From the IMG/VR virus record IMGVR_UViG_3300007513_000004, positions 62,001-126,000 of that record: a stretch of DNA of 64,000 bases. One strand, given 5' to 3'. Shown here in pieces: positions 3,428 through 50,848 of this stretch. The notes under the pieces were generated by a model that did not search any database, was not told the origin of the DNA, and saw only the letters and a program-made list of their open reading frames with translations. Within the stretch, counting starts at the first letter, position 1. Each line of letters begins with the position of its first letter. A program made the translations under genes and the position numbers.

Positions 3428-6109
3428 CTAACTTATTATGGATGCTATTTTATTTAATAGCCTTTTTCTTTCAAAATTTTCTGCCAATCTCCATAAATCT
3501 TCTCCCGACCCAACAGATTCGGCCGCTCCATCATAGTGTTCCATTCTTGGAAAAAGCTCCTCTTCTATTATATCGTTTCGCTCTTCCTCTTCTCTATCAG
3601 CATAAAACTCCTCCAGAGAAGCTCTATTCGCAACGCTCATCTCTCCCGGTATTGTACTGTATGCATCTTTGTTTCTATCGGGAATGCGCCCCCATTTTCT
3701 TTTTTGCACATCAAATGGTGTTAAAAAGATTGCTTCTCCTTGAGCTTTTGCAAATTCGGTTAGGGTTAGCAAAAACTGAACATGCCAAAACTTTATCTTT
3801 TTATCCCACCATTTGATAGCGTTATAAAGAGGTGGATTTGATTCCTTATAATGCTTTAAAGTTTCTTTTCCAAGATTATAAATATCTGCATCTCTCTGTA
3901 GATTGTTAATAACATAGCTTTCGCCATCAACCTTTGATATTCTGGCATAGGCGATAGCTCCAGAGTGATGCTGAGTTCCTCTAACAGATAATGTATCCCA
4001 AGCCTTTGGGCCCTCTCGGCCAAATAATATTTCTGACGATTTAATCATGGCGGCCGATGGCTCCATAACGATTGTAAAGCTTGGAATGTCATTATACCTT
4101 GATTTCGTCACGCTATAATCTACACCAATTGGAGTAAACCTTCTTATTGCTTCAAGCCTTTTGCTTTTGCCTCCTGATTCGGATTCTCTTTTGACAGTCA
4201 CCACATTCCCATCTGCATCCTTAGTTGTTAATGGATAGGTATCATAAAATGAATTTGTAGAACTTACCTGTGATTGCACACTTTCGAGAAAATTATTCAT
4301 TTCATTTTGATACTGATCAATGCTATACTCATGATCAGATGAAAATTGTTTTGCCATAAACTTTTGAGCATGCCAAGTTAAAAGTAATGCATCTTCATTT
4401 GACAAGCCTTGCGATTGAAGCTTTTTCACGACCCCCTCTAGTGCCGGCCCGTGCGTTGTCCACTCTGTATTCGCAAGATTTTTTAAATCATTTAATTTTA
4501 ACCTTCTAAAGACCGGAATGGCTCTGCTTAATAGCGATGCAGGAACCGGCAGCAAACCCACCTGGGTTTGTCCACCAGTTTCTCGTGGAGTATTTAAGCC
4601 AAGAACACCGCCTCGTAAAGCGTTTTCCAAATGCTCTGTAGCCGCCTCTTCATCCGCTCCCATAACTGATTCGTAGCAACCTTCACAATAAATATCGCCA
4701 TCCTCTGTTGCGTGAGTTTCATTGGCATGAACCAATTCTCCACATTCTTCGCATCCATAGTAACTTTCGACGCATCCTTCGCATATTGGATTCCCCGCTG
4801 TATTTAAATACTTTAAATCTTCTCTCAAGTATTCTTCCCAGCAGTCATCGCATTTATCTAGCAGATCTTCTGCACACTCTTCGCATACAGGATACTTCAC
4901 AAGCCTTTCGGCCTGAGCGAAGCCGGAATAGCCTCCTGATACTGGTGACTTAATTGTCGGAGCACGCCCTTCAGATTCTGGTGTTAATTGATCAATGTAT
5001 AAATTAAGTATATTTAAAATTACTTCATACCTATCTGCAGCACTTTGAAGCTGCATAACAAACTGGCTTCCATAAAGCATTTTTTGTTCTATTAAATGAT
5101 TAACATAATCATTTCCTGACATCTGTCTTGTGGTTATTGCAAATAAAAATATACCAAACATATTTCGCCTTCCAACCCCCTGCAGATCCTGCAGAGCTTG
5201 ATGCGTGCTTCTTAAGTGCAGGTCGCCAGATAGACGATCAGGGTTTGAAACATCTTTACCTTCAGATATATTTTTAATGATGTTTCTGATATAATTTGGA
5301 AGTACAGCTTTGTAGCTCCTGATCTGATCCCCGATCTGCTCAAGCTTCGCCCTTATATCATCTATATTTTCGCTTAAATAAGTTTTATATAAAGCTTCTA
5401 CCTTTTGTTTCGTTGCATCTTTTATATTCGTCCAATCATCACGACTTATTATTTTGACTTGATCTAAAGATACTTCTTCTCCGTTAATATATAGCATAAA
5501 CCCTTGGCTTATCACTCTCTCATAATTCCAAGAATGATATGGGCCAAGACCCATGATATCTTCCATTTTAATTTGAGAAATATCATCAATTTTAATCCTT
5601 GCTTTTACAGGAGTTGGAGGAGTCTCAGTGTCAACCAGCCCATCTTCAGCTCGATTTAATATCTTTATTCCCATTTCAAAATCTAAAACCTGTGGAGGCA
5701 TCCTGTTTAAGACTTGAATTAACTTTCGTATTTCTATTAAAAAATCTCCCAATAATTTTGGAATTTCTTTATCATGATTAGGCATCATCCGGTCTGGATT
5801 ATATTCTGTTTCCGGAAACTCTTCTTTATATATTGGGGCATCATCTAAATCACTGTCATCAAGAGACTCTTCTTGATAAAACCCATGAATATCATCTTCA
5901 TGAAAAGTTTCTCCGCAACCCGCACATCGATAGCTGTTTGGCTCTACCCTTCCTGCGTGAAAAACAATTTCTGAATCAGGGATAACAGAAGGGGGAAACA
6001 TTACTTGTTGTGTTTGAGCAATCTTTTCCAAATGACAAATATGCACACACTCATCCCGCATGCCTCTTTGCCCTATGATATTCAACAATTGCTCAAGCTT
6101 ATTTAACAT
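3428..6109 (-). CDS. 893-aa tagged protein with CxxC zinc-ribbon repeats and a C-terminal H...AYAR...INNLQRD domain
   Basis: N-terminal tag MLNKLEQLLNIIGQRGMRDECVHICHLEKIA; CEEC/CDDC/CEGC repeats; C-terminal RKRLLNKIAS. Confidence 0.75.
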   Translation of the reverse strand: MLNKLEQLLNIIGQRGMRDECVHICHLEKIAQTQQVMFPPSVIPDSEIVFHAGRVEPNSYRCAGCGETFHEDDIHGFYQEESLDDSDLDDAPIYKEEFPETEYNPDRMMPNHDKEIPKLLGDFLIEIRKLIQVLNRMPPQVLDFEMGIKILNRAEDGLVDTETPPTPVKARIKIDDISQIKMEDIMGLGPYHSWNYERVISQGFMLYINGEEVSLDQVKIISRDDWTNIKDATKQKVEALYKTYLSENIDDIRAKLEQIGDQIRSYKAVLPNYIRNIIKNISEGKDVSNPDRLSGDLHLRSTHQALQDLQGVGRRNMFGIFLFAITTRQMSGNDYVNHLIEQKMLYGSQFVMQLQSAADRYEVILNILNLYIDQLTPESEGRAPTIKSPVSGGYSGFAQAERLVKYPVCEECAEDLLDKCDDCWEEYLREDLKYLNTAGNPICEGCVESYYGCEECGELVHANETHATEDGDIYCEGCYESVMGADEEAATEHLENALRGGVLGLNTPRETGGQTQVGLLPVPASLLSRAIPVFRRLKLNDLKNLANTEWTTHGPALEGVVKKLQSQGLSNEDALLLTWHAQKFMAKQFSSDHEYSIDQYQNEMNNFLESVQSQVSSTNSFYDTYPLTTKDADGNVVTVKRESESGGKSKRLEAIRRFTPIGVDYSVTKSRYNDIPSFTIVMEPSAAMIKSSEILFGREGPKAWDTLSVRGTQHHSGAIAYARISKVDGESYVINNLQRDADIYNLGKETLKHYKESNPPLYNAIKWWDKKIKFWHVQFLLTLTEFAKAQGEAIFLTPFDVQKRKWGRIPDRNKDAYSTIPGEMSVANRASLEEFYADREEEERNDIIEEELFPRMEHYDGAAESVGSGEDLWRLAENFERKRLLNKIASIIS

Positions 6110-7810: not shown

Positions 7811-8191
7811 ATGAGCAGAAAGGTAGCTTGGATAAGCGACATAAAGACTGAAGAAAAACCATGGGGCAATGAGCGCTCGTGGTCTGGCGCTGGCTATATG
7901 CATGGAAAGATTATAAAGATTAACAAAGGTCATAGAACATCTCTAAAGAGATACAGAGTAAAAAGTGAGGCCTTCTATCTTCTCTCTGGCAAAATCGCTG
8001 TTATATATGGGGATGAAAAAACAACAGATATAAATTATATGCACCAAGGAATTCTTGAACCAGACCAGATATTATCTGTTCCATCCATGTGTCCATATAG
8101 ACTTGAAGCTTTGGAGGATTCTGTAATAATTGAAACATCAGATTATAGAGATTCATCTTATGAGGTCTTAGAAGATGACTACGATAGATAA
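7811..8191 (+). CDS. Cupin (mannose-6-phosphate isomerase C-terminal-like)
   Basis: EKPWGNE, GHRTSL...KSEAFYLLSG, RLEALEDSVIIETS...EDDYDR; the usual metal-binding His residues appear substituted. Confidence 0.75.
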   Translation: MSRKVAWISDIKTEEKPWGNERSWSGAGYMHGKIIKINKGHRTSLKRYRVKSEAFYLLSGKIAVIYGDEKTTDINYMHQGILEPDQILSVPSMCPYRLEALEDSVIIETSDYRDSSYEVLEDDYDR

Positions 8192-9278
8192 AATAAACAA
8201 ACTTTCAAGATGGCTATGTAAAAACGGATTAGAAAAAGATGCTATAAGTTTAAATAATCTTGTAAAAATAAGCAACTTAGGATCTTTTCATCCGGAACAT
8301 ATGCGCCACGCTTTCAATACTGTACAAAGAATGAATACGCCTAACCATAGTAATTTAGCTGACTCTTTTTACAAAATTATAAGATACTCTGATTTTTCTG
8401 AAAACGAATGGAAGCTGACAAGAGCAATTCAAGGATCAGAAGAATATAAAGAATGGAGTGAAAAAGTAGACCCTGGCGGCCTTGGTGATTTTAATTTAGA
8501 AAATAAAAAATACTGGAAAAAAATGCAAAATACTCCTGGCGTTTCAACTGTTGATATAAATCCAAGTGAACATATTGAAGTTACATTTGAATATCCCAAG
8601 GATGAAGCCGGAAGACATCCTGCTAGACGGCAGTTAAATGGGATTAAATTAAAACAAGATTTGTATTTCTCTTTCGAACTAACAGATGAGGCGAAAAAAG
8701 ATCACTCTATTGCCTTAGAGGGTGTTAAAAACTATCTAAGGTGGATTTTAGAAGTAGTTAAATATTCTGGAGAAACAAACAGAGTTTTGAAAGAAAGTAA
8801 CTCACCAACTTACATTAGAGCCTTAAAGTTTAATCCGGGAATAAATCTCAATTATCTTGCAGGTTCACTCTTTGATGAAAAAGACACTCTTAAGATTTAT
8901 TTTGCAAATGCTCATCCAAAGTTTCTTAGGCAATTTTATAATAATGTTATTTCTTTAAAAAATAATTTTTCTGGATTTACTACAAATGAGAATAGAGCCA
9001 GATTAGCTCGGGGCTTTGATTTAAGCAAGGTTCCAAACATTGGGAGTATGTCTTTTGGTCAAATTGTTGCACACAGAATGGCCTTTCATGCTTTGAATAG
9101 TTTTGAATATGTAAAAAGTATAGAAGATAACGAAGAAGGTAGAGCGCAATTTGTTGAATTTTTGGGGAATATCATGGATGTCTCTCAGCGAGAATTAATT
9201 ACTCATATGGATAATTACATAACGAAGAAAGATTCATCCGGTATCGAAAGAGTTTTGCAGGAATCAAAAATTATATAA
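8175..9278 (+). CDS. Tagged hypothetical protein
   Basis: N-terminal tag IDKINKLSRWLCKNGLEKDAISLNNLVKIS; 367-aa ORF overlapping the upstream stop. Confidence 0.7.
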   Translation: MTTIDKINKLSRWLCKNGLEKDAISLNNLVKISNLGSFHPEHMRHAFNTVQRMNTPNHSNLADSFYKIIRYSDFSENEWKLTRAIQGSEEYKEWSEKVDPGGLGDFNLENKKYWKKMQNTPGVSTVDINPSEHIEVTFEYPKDEAGRHPARRQLNGIKLKQDLYFSFELTDEAKKDHSIALEGVKNYLRWILEVVKYSGETNRVLKESNSPTYIRALKFNPGINLNYLAGSLFDEKDTLKIYFANAHPKFLRQFYNNVISLKNNFSGFTTNENRARLARGFDLSKVPNIGSMSFGQIVAHRMAFHALNSFEYVKSIEDNEEGRAQFVEFLGNIMDVSQRELITHMDNYITKKDSSGIERVLQESKII

Positions 9279-9323: not shown

Positions 9324-9503
9324 ATGGAAGCATCAGATATCATATTATTATTCATCGGATCGGTAATAGCTATGCTTGGCATTATAACCGCCAGAGCAGC
9401 GGCCGAAAAGCGATTAGAATTTATTCGTATTCAAGTTAATGATCAAATACATCGTGATGAACTTCGCAAAAAGCATCTTGACTCATTATATGGCAGGGAT
9501 TAA
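9324..9503 (+). CDS. Small membrane protein (59 aa, not in ORF track)
   Basis: MEASDIILLFIGSVIAMLGIITARAAAEKRLE...; fills the gap and ends 1 nt before the next ATG. Confidence 0.6.
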   Translation: MEASDIILLFIGSVIAMLGIITARAAAEKRLEFIRIQVNDQIHRDELRKKHLDSLYGRD

Positions 9504-9504
9504 A

Positions 9505-10035
9505 ATGATTAAAACAGCAGGTAGTATGTTTGACAAAAAGTCTCCCGAAGACAGAGACGCTATGGAGGCTCTTCTTGAGCAGCTAGATAGAGAAGAGACC
9601 GAAGAGGATTTGACTCACCTTCAAGATACCATTAACAAAATTGAAGAGTCATTAAAAATAATTCGTGAAAGAAATTTCTCTGAAATGTCTGACGAAGAAT
9701 TGCAAGAAGTTGCAGAAGTTGTTGCCAACTTAGACAAGTTCAAGAACGAAATGAATATACTAACTGACCAATACCTGGGGCAAGGAGCCTTAGCGGAAAT
9801 AGACTTGCCGGATGATGTATATCAAGACATCAAGCAAGAATTCGGCCAACCTTCAGAGTATCTTGGATGGGGCGCACGAAAGCCCGGAGATCCAGAGTTT
9901 GGAATGTTTCCTCCAACAATTCCATTAGCCGAAGCATCTTTTATTAATGAATTAGCCAAGATTGCAAATGAATTAGACAATCGTGGTCTTGCGAAAGAAG
10001 CTGATGAGCTTGATAAAATTATATTAAATAAATAA
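9505..10035 (+). CDS. Acidic coiled-coil protein with C-terminal tag
   Basis: Start re-assigned to ATG 9505 (MIKTAG...), directly after the upstream stop; ends EASFINELAKIANELDNRGLAKEADELDKIILNK. Confidence 0.75.
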   Translation: MIKTAGSMFDKKSPEDRDAMEALLEQLDREETEEDLTHLQDTINKIEESLKIIRERNFSEMSDEELQEVAEVVANLDKFKNEMNILTDQYLGQGALAEIDLPDDVYQDIKQEFGQPSEYLGWGARKPGDPEFGMFPPTIPLAEASFINELAKIANELDNRGLAKEADELDKIILNK

Positions 10036-10044
10036 TAATTATCA

Positions 10045-10602
10045 ATGGATAGATTCAATGATGATATTCATCCCATCGATGATTTATATTTCAATATAAA
10101 CAAACTCAAAAAAGACTTAAAAACAATTTATACAGCTGTTCAATACAAGGAAGGCGCTGTATATGGCATAAGCCTAACCAGGCCAGCAGATGGCTCAGAG
10201 GATGATGCTAGAGGCATATTTTGGACAAAGCCTAATGCCTCCGGCGCTGAAGAGCAACGAGAAAAGTATGTTGACGAATCAAGTTATACAAAGTTCTTAG
10301 AAGAAGCAAAAAATACTTATTACTTTGAAGTATATCAAACACTCTGTGAGCATTATAAAATTGGTCGAGTTAGAATTTTAAAACTAAAGCCTAGGACTTC
10401 ATTGAGTTGGCACAGAGATCCAGAGCCAAGAATTCACATCCCCATATTAACAAATCCCGGAGCACTAACTGTCGTTGAAAATTTTGCAACGAACATGCCT
10501 GCTGACGGATCAATCTATTTTATGAATACAATAAAATATCATACGGCAATCAATGGCGGCGAAGAAGATCGCATTCATTTGGTTGCAACTATACTAAGCT
10601 GA
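10045..10602 (+). CDS. Asp/Asn beta-hydroxylase-like 2OG-Fe(II) oxygenase
   Basis: LSWHRD (HxD), RIHIPILTN, HTAINGGEEDRIHLV. Confidence 0.85.
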   Translation: MDRFNDDIHPIDDLYFNINKLKKDLKTIYTAVQYKEGAVYGISLTRPADGSEDDARGIFWTKPNASGAEEQREKYVDESSYTKFLEEAKNTYYFEVYQTLCEHYKIGRVRILKLKPRTSLSWHRDPEPRIHIPILTNPGALTVVENFATNMPADGSIYFMNTIKYHTAINGGEEDRIHLVATILS

Positions 10603-10979
10603 ACATTTTTATCTTCCCAATCTTTAACCGCAGCTTTGATCGCATCTTCGGCAAGTACAGAACAATGTATCTTGACCGGCGGCAGGCAAAGCTCTTGAGC
10701 AATTACTGAATTCTTAATATCCTTTGCCTCATCTTTGCTCAATCCTTTTACCAACTCTGTTATAAAAGATGAAGATGCAATGGCCGAACCGCAACCAAAA
10801 GTTTTAAACTTGGCATCCTCGATAACACCATTGCTGTTGATCTTTAGCTGAAGCTTCATCACGTCACCACAGGCAGGCGCGCCGACGACTCCTGTTCCGA
10901 CTCCCTCTTCGTCTTTATCAAACGAACCTACATTCTTGGGATTTTCAAAATGATCTATAACCTTATCCGAATAAGACAT
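10575..10979 (-). CDS. iscU: Fe-S cluster scaffold IscU
   Basis: YSDKVIDHFENPKNVG, GAPACGDVM, KTFGCGSAIAS, LPPVKIHCS. Confidence 0.97.
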   Translation of the reverse strand: MSYSDKVIDHFENPKNVGSFDKDEEGVGTGVVGAPACGDVMKLQLKINSNGVIEDAKFKTFGCGSAIASSSFITELVKGLSKDEAKDIKNSVIAQELCLPPVKIHCSVLAEDAIKAAVKDWEDKNVQLSIVATK

Positions 10980-11328: not shown

Positions 11329-11492
11329 AAGCTTCTCTTCTTAATGATCAACTATTATTATTTATAGTTAAAACGTGATAAATATAATGTACTTTATCAA
11401 CGTACAATAGGTTATGTTATGAAAAAAATTATCTCTTTATTAATATCTGAAATCGATGACGTTAAAGATGATGAAATAGGCTTTGAAAGATA

Positions 11493-11564
11493 ATGGACAA
11501 GCTAAGAAAGTTATCTGTATGGTTAAATACTAATGGTTTTAAAAAAGAATCATTAGTTATATAA
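11493..11564 (+). CDS. Tag-only micro-ORF (23 aa) or tagged-gene remnant
   Basis: MDKLRKLSVWLNTNGFKKESLVI*, matches the helical tag (cf. 8175 ORF IDKINKLSRWLCKNGLEKDA). Confidence 0.5.
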   Translation: MDKLRKLSVWLNTNGFKKESLVI

Positions 11565-11565: not shown

Positions 11566-11727
11566 ATGATCACTCCGCGAATAAAAACCTATAAGAGTCA
11601 TCAGTTTGGATTGGGTGTAACTTTACATGCGGGATCAAATATGTTTAGAAATAAAGTTGTAAACTTCACCATATATTTTTTATGGTGGGAGTTTTCCGCA
11701 AGCCTTGAGCTCTCTAAACGTTTCTAG
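11566..11727 (+). CDS. Small hypothetical protein (53 aa)
   Basis: MITPRIKTYKSHQFGLGVTLHAG...WWEFSASLELSKRF; starts 1 nt after the micro-ORF stop. Confidence 0.45.
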   Translation: MITPRIKTYKSHQFGLGVTLHAGSNMFRNKVVNFTIYFLWWEFSASLELSKRF

Positions 11728-12476
11728 AGAGCGTCTTCAACCCAGCCTAATATAACGTCTTCGTTCCAACCATTGAGACCGTTGGTCAATACCATGCCTC
11801 TATCAATAACAACAAGTGTTGGCCAAGCAGATATGGGATATCCTGTCATTCCGGTTAAGTCAACAAAGTCTGCTCTATTTCCAGCAAGAACTGGCGAATC
11901 CACTATTCCATATGTAGTCGCCCAATCTTGTATATCCGTTTCGTCAGGGTCATTGCCTTGAGCATCTTCAATCAAAACAGTCACCCATAAAAATCCTTGT
12001 GGGCCATAAGTGTCTTGATGGGTCTGAACATCACCAGCTATGTTTTTGCATACACCGCACCATATGGTTGAGAAGTCTAATACCATTACTGTGTCATAAT
12101 TATCATAGAGAGTAAACGTATCACCATACTGATCTGTAAGAGAGAAGTCGCAAGGGTGGCTGCCTGGCCACTGATCGCAGTCTGTCCACGTTACAGGGGT
12201 TGGGCTACCTCCGTGAATAGAAGACCCTGGATCGTCTCCTGTGCCCGTATCTACGGCGGAATCGTCATCATCTCCCGAGGTGTCCACAGCAGAGTCGTCA
12301 TCATCTCCCGAGTCATCATCTCCCGAGGTGTCCACAGCAGAATCATCGTCGTCAACCACAGTTACCGTATCTTCCGGAACATCAGCAACATCGTCAAGGT
12401 TTTTATCATTTGAGCTTGAAGTGCATCCGGCAAGCATTGCAAACAATATTATAATTATATTTTTTGTATTAATCAT
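11724..12476 (-). CDS. Lipoprotein with DDDDSA low-complexity linker and TlpA/thioredoxin-like domain
   Basis: Lipobox LAGC, GDDDDSA repeats, DFSLTDQYG, WCGVC, AWPT. Confidence 0.85.
   Translation of the reverse strand: MINTKNIIIILFAMLAGCTSSSNDKNLDDVADVPEDTVTVVDDDDSAVDTSGDDDSGDDDDSAVDTSGDDDDSAVDTGTGDDPGSSIHGGSPTPVTWTDCDQWPGSHPCDFSLTDQYGDTFTLYDNYDTVMVLDFSTIWCGVCKNIAGDVQTHQDTYGPQGFLWVTVLIEDAQGNDPDETDIQDWATTYGIVDSPVLAGNRADFVDLTGMTGYPISAWPTLVVIDRGMVLTNGLNGWNEDVILGWVEDAL
12250..12352. repeat. Coding imperfect tandem repeats (GDDDDSAVDTS)
   Basis: Repeated tcatcatctcccgaggtgtccacagcaga units. Confidence 0.8.
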
Positions 12477-12591: not shown

Positions 12592-13014
12592 ATGTCAAAA
12601 GAAAAACTTACACCCAAAGATGTTCACAAGGCTGCGGATAAAGCAGATATAGTATGGGACGATGATGATAATTTTATGGAAGCATCGCACAAGCTGACCG
12701 AGAAGAAGCATCTCGACGATATGTCGGAAAGTGAATTATCTACAATGATTTGTAAAATAGAAAATGATCCAAAGTATTTCAAAAGACAAGCTCACTTTGC
12801 TCCTGGCAAATTTAATCTAAAAAGTAAAAATGAAAAGGGCGAGCCAGAATTTGATTTCTTTAGAAGAAATCATGATTACGAAGGTGACTACTTGGAAAAA
12901 GTAGAACGTCGCTTAAAGCGTTTGTCTAAAACTTTGAAAAAAAGAAAACATAAGCAAGAGGCGAAAGATCTAGGCTCTATGATCAAAACCTTAAAGCCAA
13001 AGAATAAAAAATGA
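12592..13014 (+). CDS. Hypothetical protein with C-terminal tag variant
   Basis: VERRLKRLSKTLKKRKHKQEAKDLGSMIKTL. Confidence 0.7.
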   Translation: MSKEKLTPKDVHKAADKADIVWDDDDNFMEASHKLTEKKHLDDMSESELSTMICKIENDPKYFKRQAHFAPGKFNLKSKNEKGEPEFDFFRRNHDYEGDYLEKVERRLKRLSKTLKKRKHKQEAKDLGSMIKTLKPKNKK

Positions 13015-13223: not shown

Positions 13224-13640
13224 GTGAATAGACTACAAAAAATTTCCAAACTACAGAAGCTTGCAATGCACGACGATCCGGACAAGCAGGTTCAACAAAA
13301 CATATTTGATGCATTAGTTGCAAGCGGACTGCCTGAAGAAATGGCCGCAACGGTTGTTTCAAATATTGGCCGCATGGACATGAGGGATCTATGGAAGAAG
13401 CTCAAGCCAGAACGGGAAGAGCAGGAAGAGCATCGCGATCCGTATGGCTGGAAGCATTCTTGTGGAGAATCTTTTCACCAACTTGATAGCCCTGGAGATC
13501 CCTGCCCAAGCTGCGGAGTAAGCGGCGGCGAAGACGACGAAGGCAGTGGCTGGACCTGGTTTGATGAAGACGATGAAACATGGGAAAAGCGATCAAGAAT
13601 TAATAAGGTAAATCAATTATTAAAAACCGCTAGAAAATGA
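13224..13640 (+). CDS. Small zinc-ribbon protein with short tags at both ends
   Basis: MNRLQKISKLQKLA...HSCG...CPSCG...KRSRINKVNQLLKTARK. Confidence 0.7.
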   Translation: MNRLQKISKLQKLAMHDDPDKQVQQNIFDALVASGLPEEMAATVVSNIGRMDMRDLWKKLKPEREEQEEHRDPYGWKHSCGESFHQLDSPGDPCPSCGVSGGEDDEGSGWTWFDEDDETWEKRSRINKVNQLLKTARK

Positions 13641-13942
13641 TAAATCTTTTTGCCATATCTGCGGTCTTCTTCTCAACACCCTCTTTCGCCTCTGATATGA
13701 CAGGCAAACAAATCTATAAAACATATTGCGCAGGATGTCATGGCGACGAAGGTCAAGGCAGCGGAATGTGTCCAAGCTTTGTTGAAGACAAAACAAGACT
13801 GGCAAAGTCTGATGAAGAATTATTATTATCTATAAAGAATGGCAAGGGGATGATGCCAGCATATAGTTGGTTATTTGAAGACGAAGATATCTTAAAGGTA
13901 GTTAAATATTTACGCGATACCTTTGAGGAAGAAGCTAAATAG
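13637..13942 (+). CDS. Class I cytochrome c (c6/c553-like)
   Basis: Signal peptide, GKQIY..YCAGCHG haem motif, GKGMMPAY axial Met. Confidence 0.92.
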   Translation: MINLFAISAVFFSTPSFASDMTGKQIYKTYCAGCHGDEGQGSGMCPSFVEDKTRLAKSDEELLLSIKNGKGMMPAYSWLFEDEDILKVVKYLRDTFEEEAK

Positions 13943-16900
13943 CAAATTTGCTAAGCATCCAAAGCTTTCTAGCCCTAGCTCTCTTTTCCTCTTCTGAATC
14001 ATCCAAAGGCTCTGACCTCCACACCGTATCTTCCCGGGACTCCTCAGAGACTCCCAGCTTCTCTTCTTGCGGCTCTTGCTCTAGAACCCTTTGGACATCA
14101 GGCTCTTCCATATCAAGTTCTGGTTCATTTAAATCTTCGTAATATTCGCTCATATAATCTTTAGATAACTGCTGCTCTACCTCTTCTTCATCATAAGGAA
14201 CGGGTTTCCAAGGGCCATCATAGCTTGTGCGTTCCCATTGATCTCTTAGGCTAAATCCTTTTTTAAAAAATTCATCATATCCAAGCCCTGTTCGCTTGGG
14301 CCAAATGTTTTTCATTTGTTCAATATAATTTTCGACATCTGCTTCTTGAATCGCAGCCTCTTCGCCCATCTCATTAAATGTCGAAATAGACCAGTACATA
14401 AATCCATAAATAAACTCTGCAAAAACTTCCTCTTTAGCTTTCGGATTTTCTCCACCTAATTTTGTCAACTCCTCTTTTAAGAATTCTATAAACTCTTCGT
14501 CTTTAAAGACGAGGCTTTCCGGATAGTCAGGATCATTGTAATAATATTTAGCCAAAAGCTTATCAACATCGGCTCTGGGGCCGAAGATATTCCATAATGA
14601 CATTTTCTTTTCTTCAAGTTCTTTTTCGTATATCTCTTTAATTGCTGGAAACAAAGACTTGCTAACCTCTTCAATTGCACGAGATAACTTTTCGCTATAA
14701 GAAGAGTTAGGCTTATGCCATCCAAAGTTAATATACATTCTCAAAACCCCTATATGTTTAAGGACCTGATCATTGTAGTTATCTGGATTAAGATTATTTT
14801 CAATCGTATTTTTAATATATTCCTTTAATTTAACTGCCAATGTATAATTAACCTTCCCAAATAGACGAATAAACTTTGGAAGATCCTCTAGCTCGGAATG
14901 CAAATCATGCTTTCTTATCAAATGAAGCATTCTAACTGAGTGCTTAAGGTCCCATATCATATTCCCCAAAACATGCATTTGCAAGTGCCGGGTCGGATGT
15001 CGTTCTTCGTTTAATTTTTGCAAAGAACTAAAAAGAGATCGCCATCTATCTTGAAGAGTATTTTTAATTATAAATTTATATAACTCTGGAAAGTTTTTTC
15101 TTGATGTTGCTTTTCTCAAGAAAGCACTAGTAGCATAATCATCTTTTAAGTCTTCTTTTTTAGCTACATCAACAATAGCCTCTCTCATATCATGGGTCAA
15201 TTCATCAGGAACTAGGCCCTCTGTTTCTTTTATTAATCTGGGGAAAAAGCTAAATATAGACCAAGAGTTAATATTGCCACGAACATCTGGAAGAGTCATT
15301 GTTCCATGGCCATATCTTTCTGGATTTTCCTTTTTTCTAGAAACTTGAGAATTTCGTTCAACATCACGGCGACCAGCATAAGTTCTAAAAAGATCCGTAG
15401 ATTTAATAGCTCTTATTGTAGTTTCTAAAAATAATGGATTTTTATAAAAAAGCCTATTTCTCAAGTAATTAGAACCATAACGAGAACCATAACGCGAAGA
15501 TAATGTATCGTTTAAATATAAATTTGCTATCCTCTTTTTTGTTTCATCAGATACCCCCTTCAGCCTTACGATCCTATTCCATTCAGGAACTACTTGCATA
15601 TGCTTTGTTCCATCAAAATTATCAACTATATTTTTTGCAACAGAATCTGTTAAGTGCTTATATTCCTTTGTCATATGCAAACCAAGACGAAAAAATGAAC
15701 CTGGATCCGTCCTCACCCCTTGTTCGGGCTCAGCCCCGCTGGAAGGATCGACGTTAAATTCATCCGCACTCGCCGGAAGCTCATCTGACCCACCTCCCCG
15801 AGATCCAGCCTCAAGATCATCCTCAGGCTGGTCGTCGTCCTCCCTCTTTAATGAGTCGGGCTCTTCTAATTCTTTTTCTATATTGCTAACAGCTTCATCA
15901 ACTATTCTTTTAAATATTCCACCCCTTCTATACAGCCTGCTGTCTACAGCTCCTTTTACAATTTCAGGGAAAGAATAAGGCGATCCAGAATGTGCGTCCA
16001 ATCCTCCAAAGTTTTCAGCAATACTTTCTGCTAAATCTGGATATTTTTTCAAAATATAAGAATTCTTAAACAAAGACATGATCATCCAATCATTCCCGCC
16101 AGACTCGTTACTGTTCCACCCCAAGCTCCTATCGTCTAACAAAATCTTTTCTGACATTCCTACAATTTTATGTACAGCGGTTTCTTCTCTTTTTTTGATC
16201 ATATCCATTATATTGTCATCAAAGACTTTCCCTCTCCAATTATGTTTTGGATTTAGATAATCAATTATCTTATTTGGACGCATCTCTGTAAGGTTGTCAA
16301 CAGCCTCTTCATGGGCTTCTGAGAAGGCTGTGCTAGAATAAGTCTTTGGAAGATTGTTGAGCAAGTATAATTCAGGATAATCTCTTGCAATATCATCAAG
16401 ATGTTTGGCAAACTCATTTGAGTATACATGATGAACTCGCTCCTTTAAGAGTACGCTTAACAAATAGCGATCATTATTGTGCTCTTTCCCTCTGTATTCA
16501 GAAAATATAAATTTCAAAGTATTTATCAGCTCTGGCTTAAACTCCTCCCTATAACCTCTAAACCATCCTTTTCTTATAAAATCAGCACGACTTTTATTCC
16601 AAACCTCCTTGGCTTCTTTCCAGGAGGTTGGTGGCATCCTGTTATAATCTGTTTGACCCAAGTGCGAAAAGCTATAGCCGCCTTCCTTTAGCCATTCTTT
16701 TATCATTTTTGAATTTGGAATAGAAACGGAAGAGGCGTGATTGCCCGGGCCCTTTATCTCCTTTACAGCATTTCTCTCTATCCTTATACAAGCACCCGCC
16801 TTTCCATTTGGAGATCTTATAGAATAAATCTCACCCTGTTCATCATTTGAATATAAACCCTGCCGAAGACAAAGGCCTAGCTTTTGTCCAAGCTTTTTTC

Positions 16901-17492
16901 TTGCAACTGGATCTACAGACGCAATAGGTTCATAAACAATTTTGCTGCCATTGCTAAAAGAGTATATCACCTTTTTCTCTGCCTCTGAGGCTGCAACAAC
17001 AGGGCCGGCAGGAGCATCGTGCCACTCTTTAGACGCCATCAAAGCATATTCCAAATCGAGATCTGCCAAAACTATAGCCTCACCCTCTGGCCACCCAGAG
17101 CCCAAGAGCCAATCCTTTATCATGGCTATGTCATTTACATCTGGGTATTGCCTATCACTGGCTTTATTAAGCTCTGTCGCTAACCATTTAATAAACTCTT
17201 TTCTATTTGCTGGAATTAAATCTTCATCTATATTATTTCGAACAAACTCTATTGCTTTTGAAGAAAAGTAAGGACCATTCGCAGCCAATTGATTAAGCAT
17301 TCTATAATACTCTCTAGGCTCTTCTCCTTCTTTCTTTGGAAACTCTTTCCTCAAAGCACCTAGGTTGATTCCAGATAAATATTTAGCATCTCTTTCTGCT
17401 GCAGTCTTTATTAAATCTTCTAAATATAAAAACTCAGTATCATGAGATTCTTTTTGCAAGTAACTTGCTAATTTTAACAAACAGTCTTTCAT
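13935..17492 (-). CDS. 1185-aa tagged protein with PcfJ-like domain and helical repeats
   Basis: N-terminal tag MKDCLLKLASYLQKESHDTEFLYLEDLIKTA; SKEWH...LGQKLGLCL...IYSIRSPNGK...KEIKGPGN resembles PcfJ-like; C-terminal KRARARKLWMLSKFA. Confidence 0.7.
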   Translation of the reverse strand: MKDCLLKLASYLQKESHDTEFLYLEDLIKTAAERDAKYLSGINLGALRKEFPKKEGEEPREYYRMLNQLAANGPYFSSKAIEFVRNNIDEDLIPANRKEFIKWLATELNKASDRQYPDVNDIAMIKDWLLGSGWPEGEAIVLADLDLEYALMASKEWHDAPAGPVVAASEAEKKVIYSFSNGSKIVYEPIASVDPVARKKLGQKLGLCLRQGLYSNDEQGEIYSIRSPNGKAGACIRIERNAVKEIKGPGNHASSVSIPNSKMIKEWLKEGGYSFSHLGQTDYNRMPPTSWKEAKEVWNKSRADFIRKGWFRGYREEFKPELINTLKFIFSEYRGKEHNNDRYLLSVLLKERVHHVYSNEFAKHLDDIARDYPELYLLNNLPKTYSSTAFSEAHEEAVDNLTEMRPNKIIDYLNPKHNWRGKVFDDNIMDMIKKREETAVHKIVGMSEKILLDDRSLGWNSNESGGNDWMIMSLFKNSYILKKYPDLAESIAENFGGLDAHSGSPYSFPEIVKGAVDSRLYRRGGIFKRIVDEAVSNIEKELEEPDSLKREDDDQPEDDLEAGSRGGGSDELPASADEFNVDPSSGAEPEQGVRTDPGSFFRLGLHMTKEYKHLTDSVAKNIVDNFDGTKHMQVVPEWNRIVRLKGVSDETKKRIANLYLNDTLSSRYGSRYGSNYLRNRLFYKNPLFLETTIRAIKSTDLFRTYAGRRDVERNSQVSRKKENPERYGHGTMTLPDVRGNINSWSIFSFFPRLIKETEGLVPDELTHDMREAIVDVAKKEDLKDDYATSAFLRKATSRKNFPELYKFIIKNTLQDRWRSLFSSLQKLNEERHPTRHLQMHVLGNMIWDLKHSVRMLHLIRKHDLHSELEDLPKFIRLFGKVNYTLAVKLKEYIKNTIENNLNPDNYNDQVLKHIGVLRMYINFGWHKPNSSYSEKLSRAIEEVSKSLFPAIKEIYEKELEEKKMSLWNIFGPRADVDKLLAKYYYNDPDYPESLVFKDEEFIEFLKEELTKLGGENPKAKEEVFAEFIYGFMYWSISTFNEMGEEAAIQEADVENYIEQMKNIWPKRTGLGYDEFFKKGFSLRDQWERTSYDGPWKPVPYDEEEVEQQLSKDYMSEYYEDLNEPELDMEEPDVQRVLEQEPQEEKLGVSEESREDTVWRSEPLDDSEEEKRARARKLWMLSKFAI

Positions 17493-17500
17493 CTAAACCT

Positions 17501-19167: not shown

Positions 19168-19188
19168 AATATTAATCCCTATATTGTT

Positions 19189-19725
19189 TTAATCTTTTTT
19201 ATTATCAACATGATCAGAGATAGCCTCTACATGCATGCCTAAAAATCCAAAATCATCTGAAAGATCAGAATCTAATTTTTGCGAAAGAACCCCAGCCTTA
19301 TATGCTATATTATGCGAAAGCTCAAGAGCTTTTTTCAACTCATCTTGTGTTGCAGATTTTTCTTTAAGAATTTCCTTTTCCAAACCAAGTAGTTCATCAG
19401 TTTCCCCAAGAGCCTCCAAGGCTATATCTATAGAGTCCTCATCTACTCCGTCATTCTTTACTTCTTCTCTAAGCATTTTAAAAGCCTTAACCGCTCCAGG
19501 ACATATGTCAAAATGCTCCGTACTTTCTCCATTAAACTCTACTTGCTCGTCTTCTTCTGGAGCATCTTCTTCTGGAGCATCTTCCTCTGGAGCGTCCCCA
19601 CTTACGCCTTCCAGGCCATTAACCAACTTTGTTAATGTAGCCATAATATCATCAACCTTTCCAGCTTCTTTGATCAAGCCTCTTTGGTCTAATTCATTTG
19701 CTAAATTTATAAGTTTTTCTAACAT
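19189..19725 (-). CDS. Acidic tagged protein
   Basis: MLEKLINLANELDQRGLIKEAGKVDDIM; EEDAP repeats; FDICPGA. Confidence 0.8.
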   Translation of the reverse strand: MLEKLINLANELDQRGLIKEAGKVDDIMATLTKLVNGLEGVSGDAPEEDAPEEDAPEEDEQVEFNGESTEHFDICPGAVKAFKMLREEVKNDGVDEDSIDIALEALGETDELLGLEKEILKEKSATQDELKKALELSHNIAYKAGVLSQKLDSDLSDDFGFLGMHVEAISDHVDNKKD

Positions 19726-41952: not shown

Positions 41953-42558
41953 TTATAACCATATGACATCTTTAAAATTCCACATAGGTTTAAAAAAATT
42001 TTCAATTTTCTTTTTATCATCATCTGTAATAACCCCATCGGGTGCTAGAACTATCTTATCATTACCCTTTGGAGCAGGCTTGCCCTCCGGTCGAGAAGGT
42101 GACTTCGTTTTTTCTCGCCACTCTTCATCACTATCATTAACAGGAACATACCCAACGGCAATAAGGTTATGGCCCTGCGGAATATGCTTCACATCTTCTT
42201 CTTCGTCTTCTGGATCCACAGTAGTTTTGGCGCTTGGTACGATTATAACATCCCAGCCCATATCGTCAGCAGGATTATTTACCTCTGTAAACTCTCCATA
42301 GTGAAAAGGCATCTTCTTGCGAAGTTTTTGTCCAAACCTTTTTTTGCTGCCCTTTGGATTGTCTAGAAATATAAATTTACCCGGATTTTCATCCAGGTAT
42401 TCCAAAACACTATCAATGCCCTCTACGTCTATCTCCTCGGTAGGATAATCTATTCCGGGCATAGAGCATATTTTTATAATGCGTTTTATTTTAAGTGCAT
42501 CATTAGAAAGGCCAAGTTTCTTAAGCTGTTTAACAAGAAGCTTTAACCTTGAAATCAC
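41953..42558 (-). CDS. Tagged inorganic pyrophosphatase-like protein
   Basis: Tag MISRLKLLVKQLKKLGLSNDALKIKRIIKICS; NPKGS, MPFHYGEF, ADDMGWDVII, NDKIVL, IENFF as in family I PPase. Confidence 0.7.
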   Translation of the reverse strand: MISRLKLLVKQLKKLGLSNDALKIKRIIKICSMPGIDYPTEEIDVEGIDSVLEYLDENPGKFIFLDNPKGSKKRFGQKLRKKMPFHYGEFTEVNNPADDMGWDVIIVPSAKTTVDPEDEEEDVKHIPQGHNLIAVGYVPVNDSDEEWREKTKSPSRPEGKPAPKGNDKIVLAPDGVITDDDKKKIENFFKPMWNFKDVIWL

Positions 42559-47756: not shown

Positions 47757-47970
47757 TAATCCATCCAGCTATTGAAGAAGCAGTATCTACAAATAGGAAT
47801 GGAAATATAGCGTGTATAAGACATACTACTCCAGCGAACAAAAGAGATATGCTAAAAAATATTGCAACAACACAATGTTTTATATATGACTCTCCAACGC
47901 TATTAGGGTGTTCTGTAAATAATCTTTTAAAAGATTTAAAAACATCTTTTAAAAATTCTTTCATTATCAA
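47719..47970 (-). CDS. DUF6356-like small membrane protein
   Basis: FTEHPNSVGESYIKH...IHAIFPFLF..TAS. Confidence 0.75.
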   Translation of the reverse strand: MIMKEFLKDVFKSFKRLFTEHPNSVGESYIKHCVVAIFFSISLLFAGVVCLIHAIFPFLFVDTASSIAGWIIDTNDERRNYYE

Positions 47971-48497
47971 TCCTCATATATAGATCCTTCGAAATCGTAT
48001 CTGGCCTCTTTCCCATTAAAGAACCCTATTCTCGCATCCAACTCTACTCCGTCAACTTCGTTGATTCCCACGCCAAGTAATTCATTCGAATAAACAGGGC
48101 TGGTTTCCTCTGTGGTTGACACTGTTATATGAGGAATGCTGTTTGAAGAGGCTACCCCAGCAACCATAACGGCCTGGCCTCGATCATCTTCATTGTATCC
48201 AATAATTTTTAACTTAACAATCTTTCCATCTATTGGCAAAGCTAGAACCTCTTCTTCCGATGGTTTAAACTTTATAGTCATATGGTGCATAAAATGCTTA
48301 GAATGAAGCTCCTTCTGAACTACGGTTCCCCACCAATTTTCCAACATTTCTTTACCAGATGGTGTTAAAAATGCCGCAGTATATAAGGCTTTCTTTTTCT
48401 TTTTTGCATATTTTATAATTTCTTCTACAGACTTTAAATATGCAGAGCCACCTTCTTTTTCTATTTTATCTTTTAATTCCTCTAATGCTTTAATCAT
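47967..48497 (-). CDS. 2H phosphoesterase (cyclic phosphodiesterase-like), with divergent tag
   Basis: Two HxT motifs, HHMTIKF and PHITVS; N-terminal MIKALEELKDKIEKEGG...EEIIKYA. Confidence 0.8.
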   Translation of the reverse strand: MIKALEELKDKIEKEGGSAYLKSVEEIIKYAKKKKKALYTAAFLTPSGKEMLENWWGTVVQKELHSKHFMHHMTIKFKPSEEEVLALPIDGKIVKLKIIGYNEDDRGQAVMVAGVASSNSIPHITVSTTEETSPVYSNELLGVGINEVDGVELDARIGFFNGKEARYDFEGSIYED

Positions 48498-50848
48498 ATT
48501 ATCTCCATATTATCTAAATAATCTGCCTCTTCAATAAGGCCTCTCTCATCTAACTCGTTTGCTACTGTAATTAATTTTTTTAATATACTCACTTTATCAT
48601 TCGACGCCTTTACTCGAAGCGATTCTTTGGGTTTAGCGCTAATGCTTACTCTATAAATAGTTACTTTTGAATGAAGATCTGGACCATAAACGTTTTCTAG
48701 TATATTATTTACATCATTTATATATTTCAAATTATCGTCATAAAATTTTATTGAACTTACAGAATCTTGCTGTGCAATTTGTCCAATTATATGCGCCTTA
48801 TATTTTCCACTAGAAATATTGGTTGGCTTTGTAAATATAGATATAGGAAGCTTAAGGCCAACGCTTGTGAGTCGATCCATTATACCCTCTGCCATACCTT
48901 CTCTTGTTTCTCTTGCTGTCAATATAACGGCGTTATCACTATGAGTCTTGTATGTGTTTAAAATCTCTTCATTCGGTATGGTCCCCAATGTTTTAGGGCT
49001 TTGATAAAACACAGCGTCTCCAGCTACAACCGCTTGCTCGGGAACATACTTGCCCCTTAAATCAAATGCTTTCAAATTTTTTGATGAAAAATATTTTTTC
49101 AACATCGGAATTCCTATTGGGCTTCCGCTTTCGTCGGAAAGAACAAACACTACCTGCCTATCCTTTCCAAGCATAGGTAAATCCACAATCCTCTTTATAA
49201 GCCTAAGGTTTCCCACCTCTTGCCTATATGAGTCTGCCAACCCTTGTATTTCTTTTCCCTTTTTATCTTTTTTGATTAATTCTACATGATTTTCATTAGC
49301 TCTTTGCACAAAAGAAATAGCCTTATGAAACATATTTGGAAGGTCCATGTCTACAGAGGTTGCATCACCCTCCTCGTTGGTCTCCACTATAGTGTGCCAC
49401 TCAGGAGTCCAGAACAGTGTGTCATCCATATCAAAAATATACACTTCTCCACTAAGCGGTGGAATAGGTATATTTAGTGGATTTTCTATTTTATCACCAT
49501 TCAAAGAATGCGCTTTTTTTATATGATTATTTAAAAAATTAGTCTCAGAAAATTTTCCAAGTTTGCTTAATTCTAAAGAAAGCTTAATCAATTTTTCTGT
49601 TATATCAGAACTGGCCTCAGATATTCCTTCAGTATTCTCTGGATTTTTTTCAAAATAAGCATCAACCTCAGCGCTCCTAATGGCTTCGCCCATCTCTGGC
49701 CCAGGCTTCATACCTCCCGCTATAAGATCTCGCGCAGATACAACCGGTGGGGCAGATGCAAAGTTTATAAACTTATTAAAGTCCTGCCCTATAGCCCCTC
49801 CAAAGTCCATTATTGCCTCGTTGCTCATAATTGTCTTTGAAGCTTTTTTCATTCGTATCAACTCTCTCTTTAGTCCGATTAAACTTTCGGCATTTAATTT
49901 AGTTAAATTTAAGAGAAATTTTACAGAATCTTTTATATCATTTCCATATTTCTTTTGAAACAAAACATTAGCTACATCGCTACTATTGTTTTCTTGAAGA
50001 ATCGTAGCAAGTTGAACAGCAACATTTCTGCTTGAAGATATTGCTTTAGAAACTTTTAATCCTGGCAATATTTGTGGAAACAAATCAAAATCTTTTAACA
50101 TATTAATATAATGAGATGGAGACTTTGATGTTTTAATTCCTTTTTTTACTTCATCCTGAATTCTTTCATCAGAAACCGCTGCTTCACTATTCTCTGTAAG
50201 TGAATTATTACTTCTAATTGCATTAGCAGTTTCTTCATCAACCTCTCCGCCCATTCTTCCTGCAAATCTAAAGGCTCTAAGGATTCTTAAACGATCTTCT
50301 CCGAATCTTTCATCAGGATCTCCAACGGTTCTTATAACCTCATTCTTAATGTCGTCTATTCCACCAACATAGTCAACGACCTCTCCCGCAACTCCATCCT
50401 CCCTCTCTTTGCGTGTTGGAATTCTATAAAACAAAGCATTTATGGTGAGATCTCGACGCATTGCGTCATCTTTTATTGATAACGGATTCTCTTTTGTGGA
50501 AAGGGTGGCCTCACCACCCATCCTGGTTCCGCGCTCTACTCGATATGGAGCAAATTCATACTCGTTTCCATCATAAGCTATCATCCTTGCTACTGCGAAT
50601 GACTTTTCGCCCTGAACCCCTATGCGCTTAACGTACGGGCTTAAAATTCTAATGACATCTTCCGGAGTTGCGTTTGTTGCTATATCATAATCCTTTGGAG
50701 ACTTTCCAAGAATGGTGTCCCTTACTGCTCCTCCAGCAATGTACATTTCAAATCCAGCAGAAGCCATTACATCCCTTAGTTGATAAAGGCTTTCAGGAAT
50801 TTCCATAGGAATTTCCATTATAATTGGATTATCAAAAGCTTCAGACAT
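48494..50848 (-). CDS. cca: Class II tRNA nucleotidyltransferase (CCA/poly(A) polymerase family) fused via a tag to an RNA-repair-type HAD phosphatase
   Basis: GGAVRD..LG..PKDYDIAT, RRDLTINAL, EDRLRILRAFRF, ERI..E; then FDMDDTLF, ILTAR, K, FYDD (HAD); internal and C-terminal tags. Confidence 0.85.
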   Translation of the reverse strand: MSEAFDNPIIMEIPMEIPESLYQLRDVMASAGFEMYIAGGAVRDTILGKSPKDYDIATNATPEDVIRILSPYVKRIGVQGEKSFAVARMIAYDGNEYEFAPYRVERGTRMGGEATLSTKENPLSIKDDAMRRDLTINALFYRIPTRKEREDGVAGEVVDYVGGIDDIKNEVIRTVGDPDERFGEDRLRILRAFRFAGRMGGEVDEETANAIRSNNSLTENSEAAVSDERIQDEVKKGIKTSKSPSHYINMLKDFDLFPQILPGLKVSKAISSSRNVAVQLATILQENNSSDVANVLFQKKYGNDIKDSVKFLLNLTKLNAESLIGLKRELIRMKKASKTIMSNEAIMDFGGAIGQDFNKFINFASAPPVVSARDLIAGGMKPGPEMGEAIRSAEVDAYFEKNPENTEGISEASSDITEKLIKLSLELSKLGKFSETNFLNNHIKKAHSLNGDKIENPLNIPIPPLSGEVYIFDMDDTLFWTPEWHTIVETNEEGDATSVDMDLPNMFHKAISFVQRANENHVELIKKDKKGKEIQGLADSYRQEVGNLRLIKRIVDLPMLGKDRQVVFVLSDESGSPIGIPMLKKYFSSKNLKAFDLRGKYVPEQAVVAGDAVFYQSPKTLGTIPNEEILNTYKTHSDNAVILTARETREGMAEGIMDRLTSVGLKLPISIFTKPTNISSGKYKAHIIGQIAQQDSVSSIKFYDDNLKYINDVNNILENVYGPDLHSKVTIYRVSISAKPKESLRVKASNDKVSILKKLITVANELDERGLIEEADYLDNMEII

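Follow-up and report, generated by a model that had tools for sequence, protein, structure and literature searches.

In a 64,000-nucleotide stretch of phage DNA (positions 62,001 to 126,000 of the IMG/VR record IMGVR_UViG_3300007513_000004; hereafter the window), one short helical motif recurs on proteins that are otherwise unrelated, raising the question of what this shared element is and where it might take the proteins that bear it. The window comes from a huge phage, represented by 223,402 bp in IMG/VR, to which the window maps in the same orientation at roughly 62,004-126,003, and by a longer assembly of the same phage in ENA (ERZ23498664 scaffold_26, 277,573 bp); its G+C content is about 39% and it has no DNA-level similarity to any cultured phage. 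A previous examination of this DNA from its letters alone (the sequence-only reading) had listed about 17 copies of the motif. Here, we find that the motif, a 29-residue segment that we call the tag, is one portable protein module carried by unrelated proteins and kept by selection acting on the protein and not on the DNA, a conclusion that is well supported.

A loose pattern and a hidden Markov model (HMM) derived from the previously listed copies retrieved 13 of them in real reading frames. To guard against circularity, an independent model was built from 198 copies, all from proteins outside the window, and used both as an ungapped matrix and as an HMM. Scored at every position of the 62 window proteins, the matrix found 12 sites at 12.9 to 82.9 bits. 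Composition-matched shuffles reached a maximum of 8.6 bits over 357,280 positions, hence no score of 10 bits or more is expected, and the non-tag positions of the real window proteins top out at about 2.6 bits; together, these two controls exclude chance or low-complexity similarity as the origin of the tag. Adding two copies that lie outside the matrix scoring (48497-48580, detected by the HMM, and the stub at 11496-11561) gives 14 solid copies. Two more are weak (7.9 and 5.1 bits), about 0.05 such scores being expected per shuffled proteome, and both lie in register at residue 3. An open frame exists at every coordinate of the earlier list and all its copies were recovered as solid or weak except the one at 48497 (gene 47967-48497), which scores -1.9 bits and resembles the tag in its second helix only.

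The view that there is no module, the motif being either a fortuitous similarity of K/L/E-rich helices or the N-terminus of a duplicated family, was tested and rejected, and we consider its probability to be virtually nil. It can appeal to three window copies (ending at 49597, 30148 and 17486) that are weak in a leave-one-out model made from window copies alone, and to the profile catching a few tandem TPR-like repeat proteins (5 of the 150 best matches, which are false positives). The outside models rescue these three copies, with HMM 22.5 bits for 30148 and matrix scores of 30.5 (49597), 17.4 (30148) and 21.8 bits (17486). Against this view stand the distance between the matrix sites and the best shuffle, the near-invariance of L3, L10, D11, G14, E18, A19 and D23 in hundreds of outside proteins (95-99% of the outside copies, consensus KELIKLANHLDKKGLxKEADYLDxIIKKA), the unrelatedness of the cargo, and the presence of copies at C-termini and inside known enzymes.

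The level at which the tag is conserved was addressed with the proteins and with their DNA. A tag-masked all-against-all BLAST of 69 tagged proteins, array neighbours included, detected similarity in 2 of 2346 pairs, which excludes a duplicated gene family with a conserved N-terminus. Among 20 copies from the window's genome, amino-acid identity is 54% and third-codon-position identity 43%, identical residues being encoded by the same codon in 52% of cases, in agreement with the synonymous variation already reported. The DNA upstream of the start codons of the tagged genes, which are tightly packed, shows no conservation, and among 143 proteins with an N-terminal tag the protein conservation ends at about residue 32. 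Varying codons and unconserved upstream DNA exclude a DNA- or RNA-level element, shared promoter or leader; since, in addition, the cargo is unrelated, the tag must be a portable module of the protein. Tag identity is 0.56 within contigs versus 0.49 between them, consistent with one consensus for the whole group.

The tag is a self-contained two-helix hairpin. Helix A spans residues 1-13 and helix B residues 15-29, and a glycine at 14 makes the turn between them. AlphaFold2 predicts over the tags a helix at 2-14, a three-residue turn and a second helix from residue 18 (pLDDT, the per-residue model confidence, 85-92), and the same hairpins at both tags of a conserved family named C6, whose overall model is poor (pLDDT 69; pTM, the predicted template-modelling score, 0.27). 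The spacing of hydrophobic and small residues, L-A-x-x-L-x-x-x-G-x-x-x-E-A, follows that of one TPR repeat, and in the PDB the tag matches designed TPR proteins only, and these weakly (E = 0.008 by sequence, E = 1.5 by fold). Foldseek of the AlphaFold2 model of a two-tag protein against the PDB gave no significant match.

A two-helix nucleic-acid-binding motif of SAP, HeH or Rho-N type, placed on proteins acting on DNA or RNA, appears very improbable. The pattern L..L...L..RGL...A......I loosely resembles such motifs, and the CCA-adding enzyme, the ArdC-N domain and the 2H phosphoesterase encoded here do act on nucleic acids. However, no Pfam model, those families included, matches any copy at E ≤ 10; the conserved surface is acidic (D11, E18, D20, D23) and so poorly suited to nucleic acids; peptidoglycan hydrolases are also among the cargo; and the hydrophobic spacing is TPR-like.

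The tag family appears to be new, being absent from Pfam, PHROGs, PDB sequences, GenBank phages and the searchable open-access literature, in line with the earlier impression that it is not a described family. At E ≤ 10, the 13 window copies gave nothing relevant in Pfam and no match to TPR, SAP, HeH, Rho_N or Dockerin_1, the latter being matched by a single outside protein (E = 1.6e-4) and by none of the 13 window copies. When ten tagged window proteins were compared with Pfam, matches fell in the cargo domains only, and among 84 outside tagged proteins no Pfam-A or PHROGs v4 family occurred in more than one member. The GenBank phages hold no true match; the only one returned, gp25 of Sphingomonas phage PAU (E = 0.04), lies in an internal stretch of thymidylate synthase and was discarded as chance. 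We found no description of the tag in searchable open-access papers and preprints.

In the sequence of uncultured viruses the tag is widespread. Against 1.84 billion representative proteins, the profile of 13 copies matched 1008 clusters at E ≤ 0.001, which belong to huge uncultured phages, and a single match, on a 2.9-kb binned contig, was found in the 185,579 prokaryotic species genomes of GTDB; because the motif is essentially absent from cellular genomes, the tag copies no host motif. For IMG/VR, the search started from a 4-copy subset of the alignment, the full 13-copy alignment having no sufficiently conserved stretch. A strict degenerate DNA pattern returned 109 stretches on about 85 contigs of 4.5 to 371 kb; 104 of them were HMM-confirmed, with 214 tags over 1.04 Mb. 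Tagged genes often follow one another in the same orientation as tandem arrays; one such array, immediately upstream of the window (contig 53-62 kb), has 12 in a row, and other phages have 5 to 7 per 6 kb. A Tara Oceans mesopelagic sample (0.1-0.22 µm) is the source of one protein in an outside tagged cluster, and so the tag-bearing phage group is at least partly marine.

The tag had been described as position-independent; instead, it is strongly N-terminal. The best 150 proteins hold 218 copies, 120 of which start at residue 8 or earlier, mostly at residue 3, and typically open with M-[IL]-K-E-L-I-K-L-A, while 21 are C-terminal and 77 internal. Similarly, of the 17 window copies claimed earlier, 10 begin no later than residue 12, as do 9 of the 16 that are supported. 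Two copies occur in 55 of these proteins and three in 7, separated by long non-conserved spacers, and some multi-tag proteins consist of a tag at each end and little else. Other features noted previously were borne out, tagged genes being found on both strands and the tag being absent from DnaJ, TopA, Def, Dut and the tail-fibre proteins.

What follows the tag varies from protein to protein. In the window, the cargo includes an 854-aa protein with PG_binding_1 and phage-lysozyme domains and two tags, a 784-aa CCA-adding enzyme, also with two tags, and a 445-aa protein with an ArdC-N-like domain; eleven tagged window proteins match no family. Among the 84 outside tagged proteins, single cases of PolyA_pol, lysozyme, PG_binding, FliG, HEAT, Phage_T7_Capsid (1e-4) and ART-PolyVal (4e-4) were found, the Phage_T7_Capsid match (one protein of 84) lying in the cargo part and not being decisive for scaffold homology. 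Tagged proteins are short across the fetched loci (median about 180 aa) and their cargo is poorly conserved and fast-evolving. Transmembrane-like segments occur in 4% of them versus 10% of untagged open reading frames (ORFs), and membrane targeting by the tag was rejected on this ground. The identifiable cargo (a large lysozyme, an ArdC-like protein, an ADP-ribosyltransferase) is of the kind that phages inject, which fits loading into the capsid and lends it indirect support. In addition to the tagged ArdC-N-like protein of the window (34678-36015), which has no peptidase domain, the phage encodes a complete untagged ArdC of 313 aa with ArdC-N and MPTase-PolyVal domains. Its gene (L143 5954-6895) lies upstream of the window, at about 45-48 kb of the contig, and is separated by a few genes from a tagged array that precedes it.

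Further clues to a destination come from the head genes of related phages; the flanks reached around the window hold metabolic and anti-defence genes, and no head gene was identified in the window. ORFs of the fetched loci were clustered into families to read gene order, which revealed a conserved succession of primase, C14, C11, C7, C6, C4, C10, C2, C3, C1, C1, one or more variable ORFs, C8 and large terminase, followed by portal, C20, C12, C12, C21 and C19, the last having a prohead-protease domain (phrog_18299). The variable slot holds a tagged gene, different and unrelated from case to case, 0.5-2.3 kb upstream of the large terminase gene and on the same strand, in 17 of 32 terminase loci. 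Within the conserved part, C6 (L125 279-1289 and 18 homologues) itself bears one to three tags: a domain of about 140 residues with the invariant LSTRY.P...G.Q...DG..Q.P.T...YDYNEGF is directly followed by a tag, at which some members end and after which others add a variable region and a second tag. C6 has no match in Pfam, PHROGs or PDB, its AlphaFold2 model being too poor for a structure search, and the neighbouring families C1, C2, C4, C7, C8, C20, C12 and C21 have none in the same three databases either. In one of these loci (L050 1871-4699, minus strand) the portal gene encodes 943 aa, versus about 530-570 aa elsewhere, and includes a LAGLIDADG domain, probably an intein inside the portal protein.

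The capsid gene could also be placed. In the joined loci L107 and L120, a protease fusion is followed by a 173-aa protein with a tag at either end, a protein of 233 aa, one of 242 aa that is tagged C-terminally, three more genes and a 337-aa capsid protein, which (L120 1896-2906, plus strand) matches gp27 of Bacillus phage G (PDB 6wkk) with E = 2.8e-91 and 53% identity. A tagged gene directly follows the capsid gene in L061, and a three-tag protein lies two genes after the portal in L064. A scan of IMG/VR with the capsid protein returned 438 loci, and since a phage-G-like capsid protein is this common, many tag-bearing contigs can be tied to the capsid lineage of phage G, itself a 497-kb phage from soil. 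The best 80 of these 438 loci (L147-L226), picked by their capsid gene and blind to tags, lie on contigs as long as 441 kb, and the tag-bearing contigs number at least 12 among them. Fifteen of the 80 hold 25 tags, every one on the strand of the capsid gene and 22 of them upstream of it. The module order in these loci is protease, F12, F7, F8, F2, F3 and capsid, and in 22 of the 80 the F2 family combines a segment Q.K.I.VA.KMPTG.L.G.HA with one or two copies of a tag-like hairpin, often C-terminal. A C-terminal tag also lies between the protease or portal gene and the capsid gene in L147, L148 and L151 (242-250 aa), L220 (145 aa), L222 (1047 aa) and L224 (1089 aa). These C-terminal hairpins in the scaffold position were seen in relatives, the window having no identified head genes.

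We favour, with chances that we place just short of even, a reading of the tag as a docking hairpin that loads varied, acidic and fast-evolving proteins into the procapsid core. A hairpin of 13+13 residues cannot be stable alone and would thus need a partner, which should be common to the clade because the acidic surface (D11, E18, D20, D23) is conserved. That partner would most likely be the assembling procapsid, either the capsid interior or the scaffold or core hairpins, because scaffold-position proteins carry related hairpins and tagged genes sit in the head operon. In this scenario, the hairpin by which scaffold or core proteins bind the capsid interior, or each other, would have been copied onto many accessory proteins, including the lysozyme, the ArdC-like protein, the tRNA-repair enzymes and many proteins without assigned function. 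These accessory proteins would co-assemble into the procapsid and might travel with the DNA into the next cell. The earlier proposal of a portable address label loading the capsid or another compartment therefore holds for its portable module on unrelated proteins, and its capsid destination receives indirect support from the head-operon slots, the scaffold-position hairpins and the type of cargo.

Several observations weigh against capsid loading. Virion proteomics or binding data for these phages were not found, and gene order alone points to the partner. Among the 143 N-terminally tagged proteins, the region after the tag shows no clearly conserved prohead-protease site, but a weak [AS]-x-E tendency (E in 26% at position 33). 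Outside the tag the cargo is acidic, at -5.7 versus -1.5 net charge per 100 residues for untagged conserved proteins (Mann-Whitney p = 1e-15), and incoming DNA might expel acidic proteins, as it does scaffolds; in T4, by comparison, the internal proteins are basic. There are also mini-proteins of 46-60 aa that consist of the tag only, for which a role as cargo is hard to see. Between the protease and capsid genes, the lineage whose tags are most canonical has only degenerate hairpins, and the 25-kb stretch scanned around the capsid gene of phage G holds no tags; nor did BLAST detect a homologue of F2 or F3 there. Finally, the largest arrays of the window phage adjoin ArdC/MPTase, SprT, NUDIX and kinase genes, surroundings that suggest an early anti-defence region and not a head module.

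In an alternative that we hold to be possible, if doubtful, the hairpins are stickers, pairing with each other or with one phage hub and gathering their clients into a cytoplasmic body (condensate, factory or compartment) and not into the capsid. Multi-tag proteins would then be cross-linkers, and tag-only mini-proteins regulators. Consistent with this, 62 of the top 149 scanned proteins have two or three tags with long non-conserved spacers, some being little more than a tag per end, tag-only ORFs of 46-60 aa occur, and the arrays of the window phage lie in the early-looking region just described. A two-tag protein was modelled by AlphaFold2 as compact (pTM 0.64), which would fit packing of hairpin against hairpin, a solitary TPR-like hairpin would be expected to need a partner helix pair, and the near-uniform consensus across genomes (0.56 vs 0.49) is what a self-binding module should show. 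Such pairing leaves the fixed head-operon positions and the scaffold-position hairpins unexplained, and it is also compatible with capsid loading through a tagged scaffold, so that it is only partly a rival. In a stronger form, the tag would be the address code of a phage-built body, condensed by multivalent tag-spacer-tag proteins and recruiting single-tag proteins, among them anti-restriction, tRNA-repair and cell-wall enzymes; that a bacterial virus would here have a sorting system written in sequence and separate from capsid loading seems to us unlikely.

The hairpin could also bind one conserved host protein (chaperone, RNA polymerase, ribosome or protease), bringing takeover proteins there or marking them, which we regard as quite improbable. 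The cargo, small, acidic, fast-evolving and without assigned function, is typical of host-takeover genes, the tag-only mini-proteins could be plain inhibitors, the conserved charged surface suggests one fixed partner, and the phage has its own DnaJ next to tagged genes. Here again, however, the head-operon positions and the scaffold-position hairpins find no explanation, and the near-absence of the motif from cellular genomes speaks against mimicry of a host motif.

Among known systems, those that the tag would resemble in its action are address and docking elements, namely the capsid targeting sequence of T4, the scaffold hairpin of P22, the peptides of encapsulins and microcompartments, and dockerins, yet it belongs to none of them. 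In T4, the targeting sequence has about 10 residues, is N-terminal only and is removed by the prohead protease. It is borne by diverse internal proteins (IPI-III, Alt) encoded by hyperplastic loci in which only the address is conserved (PMC3012670). A further precedent is SPN3US, with about 50 head proteins and an ejection-protein mass (PMC7411985). As in T4, where the proteins so addressed are loaded into the prohead core and injected and several of them are anti-defence (PMC3012670), an N-terminal address is common to fast-evolving proteins that are otherwise unrelated; the tandem arrays and the variable slot for a tagged gene before the terminase gene look alike too. The previously drawn T4 comparison thus stands for the functional logic and fails for the element itself: the tag is a folded hairpin of 29 residues, which also occurs C-terminally, internally or between domains (21 of 218 copies C-terminal and 77 internal, at odds with a short N-terminal-only peptide), in up to three copies and with no clearly conserved cleavage site. 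It has no sequence similarity to the T4 peptide, and it is a candidate packaging signal only.

The scaffolding protein gp8 of P22 has a C-terminal coat-binding helix-turn-helix, that of phi29, gp7, a helix-loop-helix, and fusions engineered to the P22 hairpin load foreign cargo into capsids. Like the tag, the P22 element is short, has two helices joined by a tight turn and is charged on its surface, and in relatives, similar hairpins of the tag type close proteins whose genes lie shortly before that of the capsid. No sequence relation is detectable, though, a PDB profile search returning designed TPR proteins and unrelated chains only; the hairpin is on one protein in P22 versus dozens per genome here, and its surface is basic in P22 and acidic here. 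From TPR proteins, with which it shares residue spacing and the layout of helix A, turn and helix B, the tag differs in being solitary, with no tandem array of at least three 34-residue repeats, and in having invariant acidic residues outside the TPR signature. Encapsulin and microcompartment peptides are likewise terminal (N or C), joined by a non-conserved linker and found on unrelated cargo, and encapsulin shells have the HK97 fold of phage capsids (PMC10960027, PMC8229669, PMC13185644). Those are short single peptides or amphipathic helices of cellular organisms with one to few cargo proteins, whereas the tag has two helices, is so far confined to viral sequence apart from one small binned contig, and is carried by dozens of proteins per genome. 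Entry into the host together with the DNA has been proposed for the polyvalent proteins of phages and conjugative elements (PMC5512222, PMC7824862), whose cargo domains overlap with those found here, with ArdC-N and ART-PolyVal tagged and MPTase-PolyVal next door, and a relative has a Topo-IB/2H/CCA-adding fusion of 2602 aa directly upstream of a tagged array. In polyvalent proteins, many effector domains share a chain, in contrast to the separate genes with a common tag described here.

Should the tag prove to be a signal for loading or docking, a group of huge and uncultured phages, marine at least in part, would sort dozens of unreadable proteins by one 29-residue code, and about 1000 unannotated protein clusters would gain a first functional handle, as proteins that travel or assemble with the head or join one common complex. 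Copying a scaffold-type binding hairpin onto new genes would be a way to build a large injected arsenal, and the tag would be a natural compact means of loading foreign proteins into large capsids. Even with another destination, the family itself appears new, and it is widespread and simple to test.

All copies of the window are given in Table 1. In locus L028, the homologue of gene 13935-17492 bears a canonical tag, likewise at residue 3, which independently supports the degenerate copy. The stub ORF 11490-11564 stands alone on the plus strand in a 395-nt gap between two minus-strand genes and is probably the remnant of a lost tagged gene.

Table 1. Copies of the tag in the 64,000-nucleotide window.
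Feature	Position	Strand	Location	Support and remarks
Tag, most canonical in the window	33602-33688	+	Residue 3 of 73-aa protein 33596-33817	Matrix 82.9, HMM 63.9 bits
Tag	9946-10032	+	Extreme C-terminus of protein 9439-10035	Matrix 54.3, HMM 38.5 bits
Tag	19633-19719	-	Residue 3 of 178-aa protein 19189-19725	Matrix 47.0, HMM 38.3 bits
Tag	19069-19155	-	Residue 5 of 217-aa protein 18514-19167	Matrix 40.6, HMM 28.7 bits
Tag	35896-35982	-	Residue 12 of 445-aa ArdC-N-like-domain protein 34678-36015	38.5 bits; Pfam ArdcN E=4.5e-5
Tag	48497-48580	-	Last 28 residues of 784-aa CCA-adding enzyme 48494-50848	HMM 39.5 bits; PolyA_pol E=2e-30
Divergent tag	49511-49597	-	Between domains, residue 418 of the CCA-adding enzyme	Ungapped 30.5, HMM only 5.4 bits
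Tag	28724-28810	-	Between domains, residue 449 of 854-aa PG_binding_1 and lysozyme protein 27590-30154	Matrix 28.5, HMM 28.2
Tag	30062-30148	-	Residue 3 of lysozyme protein 27590-30154	Matrix 17.4, HMM 22.5 bits
Degenerate tag, lacking conserved D11, G14, A19	17400-17486	-	Residue 3 of 1185-aa protein 13935-17492	Ungapped 21.8 bits
Divergent (basic-type) tag	8187-8273	+	Residue 5 of 367-aa protein 8175-9278	17.3 bits; about half identical to stub 11496
Divergent tag	18218-18304	-	Residue 71 of 337-aa protein 17501-18514	Matrix 14.8; HMM 11.5, E=0.018
Divergent lysine-rich copy, no glycine turn	12907-12993	+	Near C-terminus of protein 12592-13014	12.9 bits, above every shuffle
Stub copy, 22 residues then stop	11496-11561	+	Inside 24-aa ORF 11490-11564	Called as a 24-aa gene in L029
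Weak copy	6017-6103	-	Residue 3 of 893-aa protein 3428-6109	7.9 bits
Weak charge-swapped copy	42466-42552	-	Residue 3 of protein 41953-42558	5.1 bits
Claimed copy, no statistical support	48405-48491	-	Residue 3 of 176-aa 2H-phosphoesterase-like protein 47967-48497	-1.9 bits

A second flavour of the tag was also noticed, in which K, N, T or S replace the acidic D11 and D23 (L..[FWY]L.K.G[FL].K[ED][AS]). It is represented in the window by the copies at 8187, 11496, 18304, 28810, 30148, 42552, 12907 and 49597, and the CCA-adding enzyme has one copy of each flavour. Conceivably, the acidic flavour might pair with the basic one.

Among the other genes of the window, which holds no tRNA gene that we could find, DnaJ (encoded beside tagged genes), TopA, peptide deformylase, dUTPase, two AhpC-like proteins, NifU, the CCA-adding enzyme, a 2H-phosphoesterase-like protein, two trypsin-like peptidases and a CAAX protease could be named, together with tail-fibre-like proteins that include an S74 chaperone domain, DUF2793/PKD/collagen and phrog_9942. 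The proteases are two trypsin-like serine peptidases and a CAAX/Rce1-type membrane protease (coordinates listed: 19765-21092, minus strand, and 62369-63166, plus strand), one of the trypsin-like peptidases lying directly upstream of four consecutive tagged genes (13935-19725). The unusual auxiliary genes encode a DUF2061 protein, NifU/IscU, a cytochrome-c-like protein, a sulfotransferase, an Asp/Arg-hydroxylase-like protein and two AhpC/thioredoxin-like proteins; their coordinates are listed as 6099-6323, 10575-10979, 13637-13942, 2707-3423, 10045-10602, 11724-12476 and 22276-22872.

A tRNA-repair cluster occupies 47967-53268 on the minus strand and comprises TopA, a small ORF, the two-tag CCA-adding enzyme and the 2H-phosphoesterase-like protein. 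In a 223-kb relative (GCA_902730985.1, L032/L033 1-6748), Topo-IB, 2H/LigT and PolyA_pol domains are fused in the single protein of 2602 aa mentioned above, and the tagged array that directly follows it has seven tags in six genes, with a weak copy further downstream. Past the high-coordinate end of the window (beyond 64000), that is upstream, by the direction of transcription, of its last minus-strand genes, the phage (L144 1-9600) encodes PrkA, DUF444 and SpoVR, a bacterial stress or sporulation trio, along with a diadenylate cyclase, a sigma-70-family factor, a class II ribonucleotide reductase and a PIN-PhoH protein.

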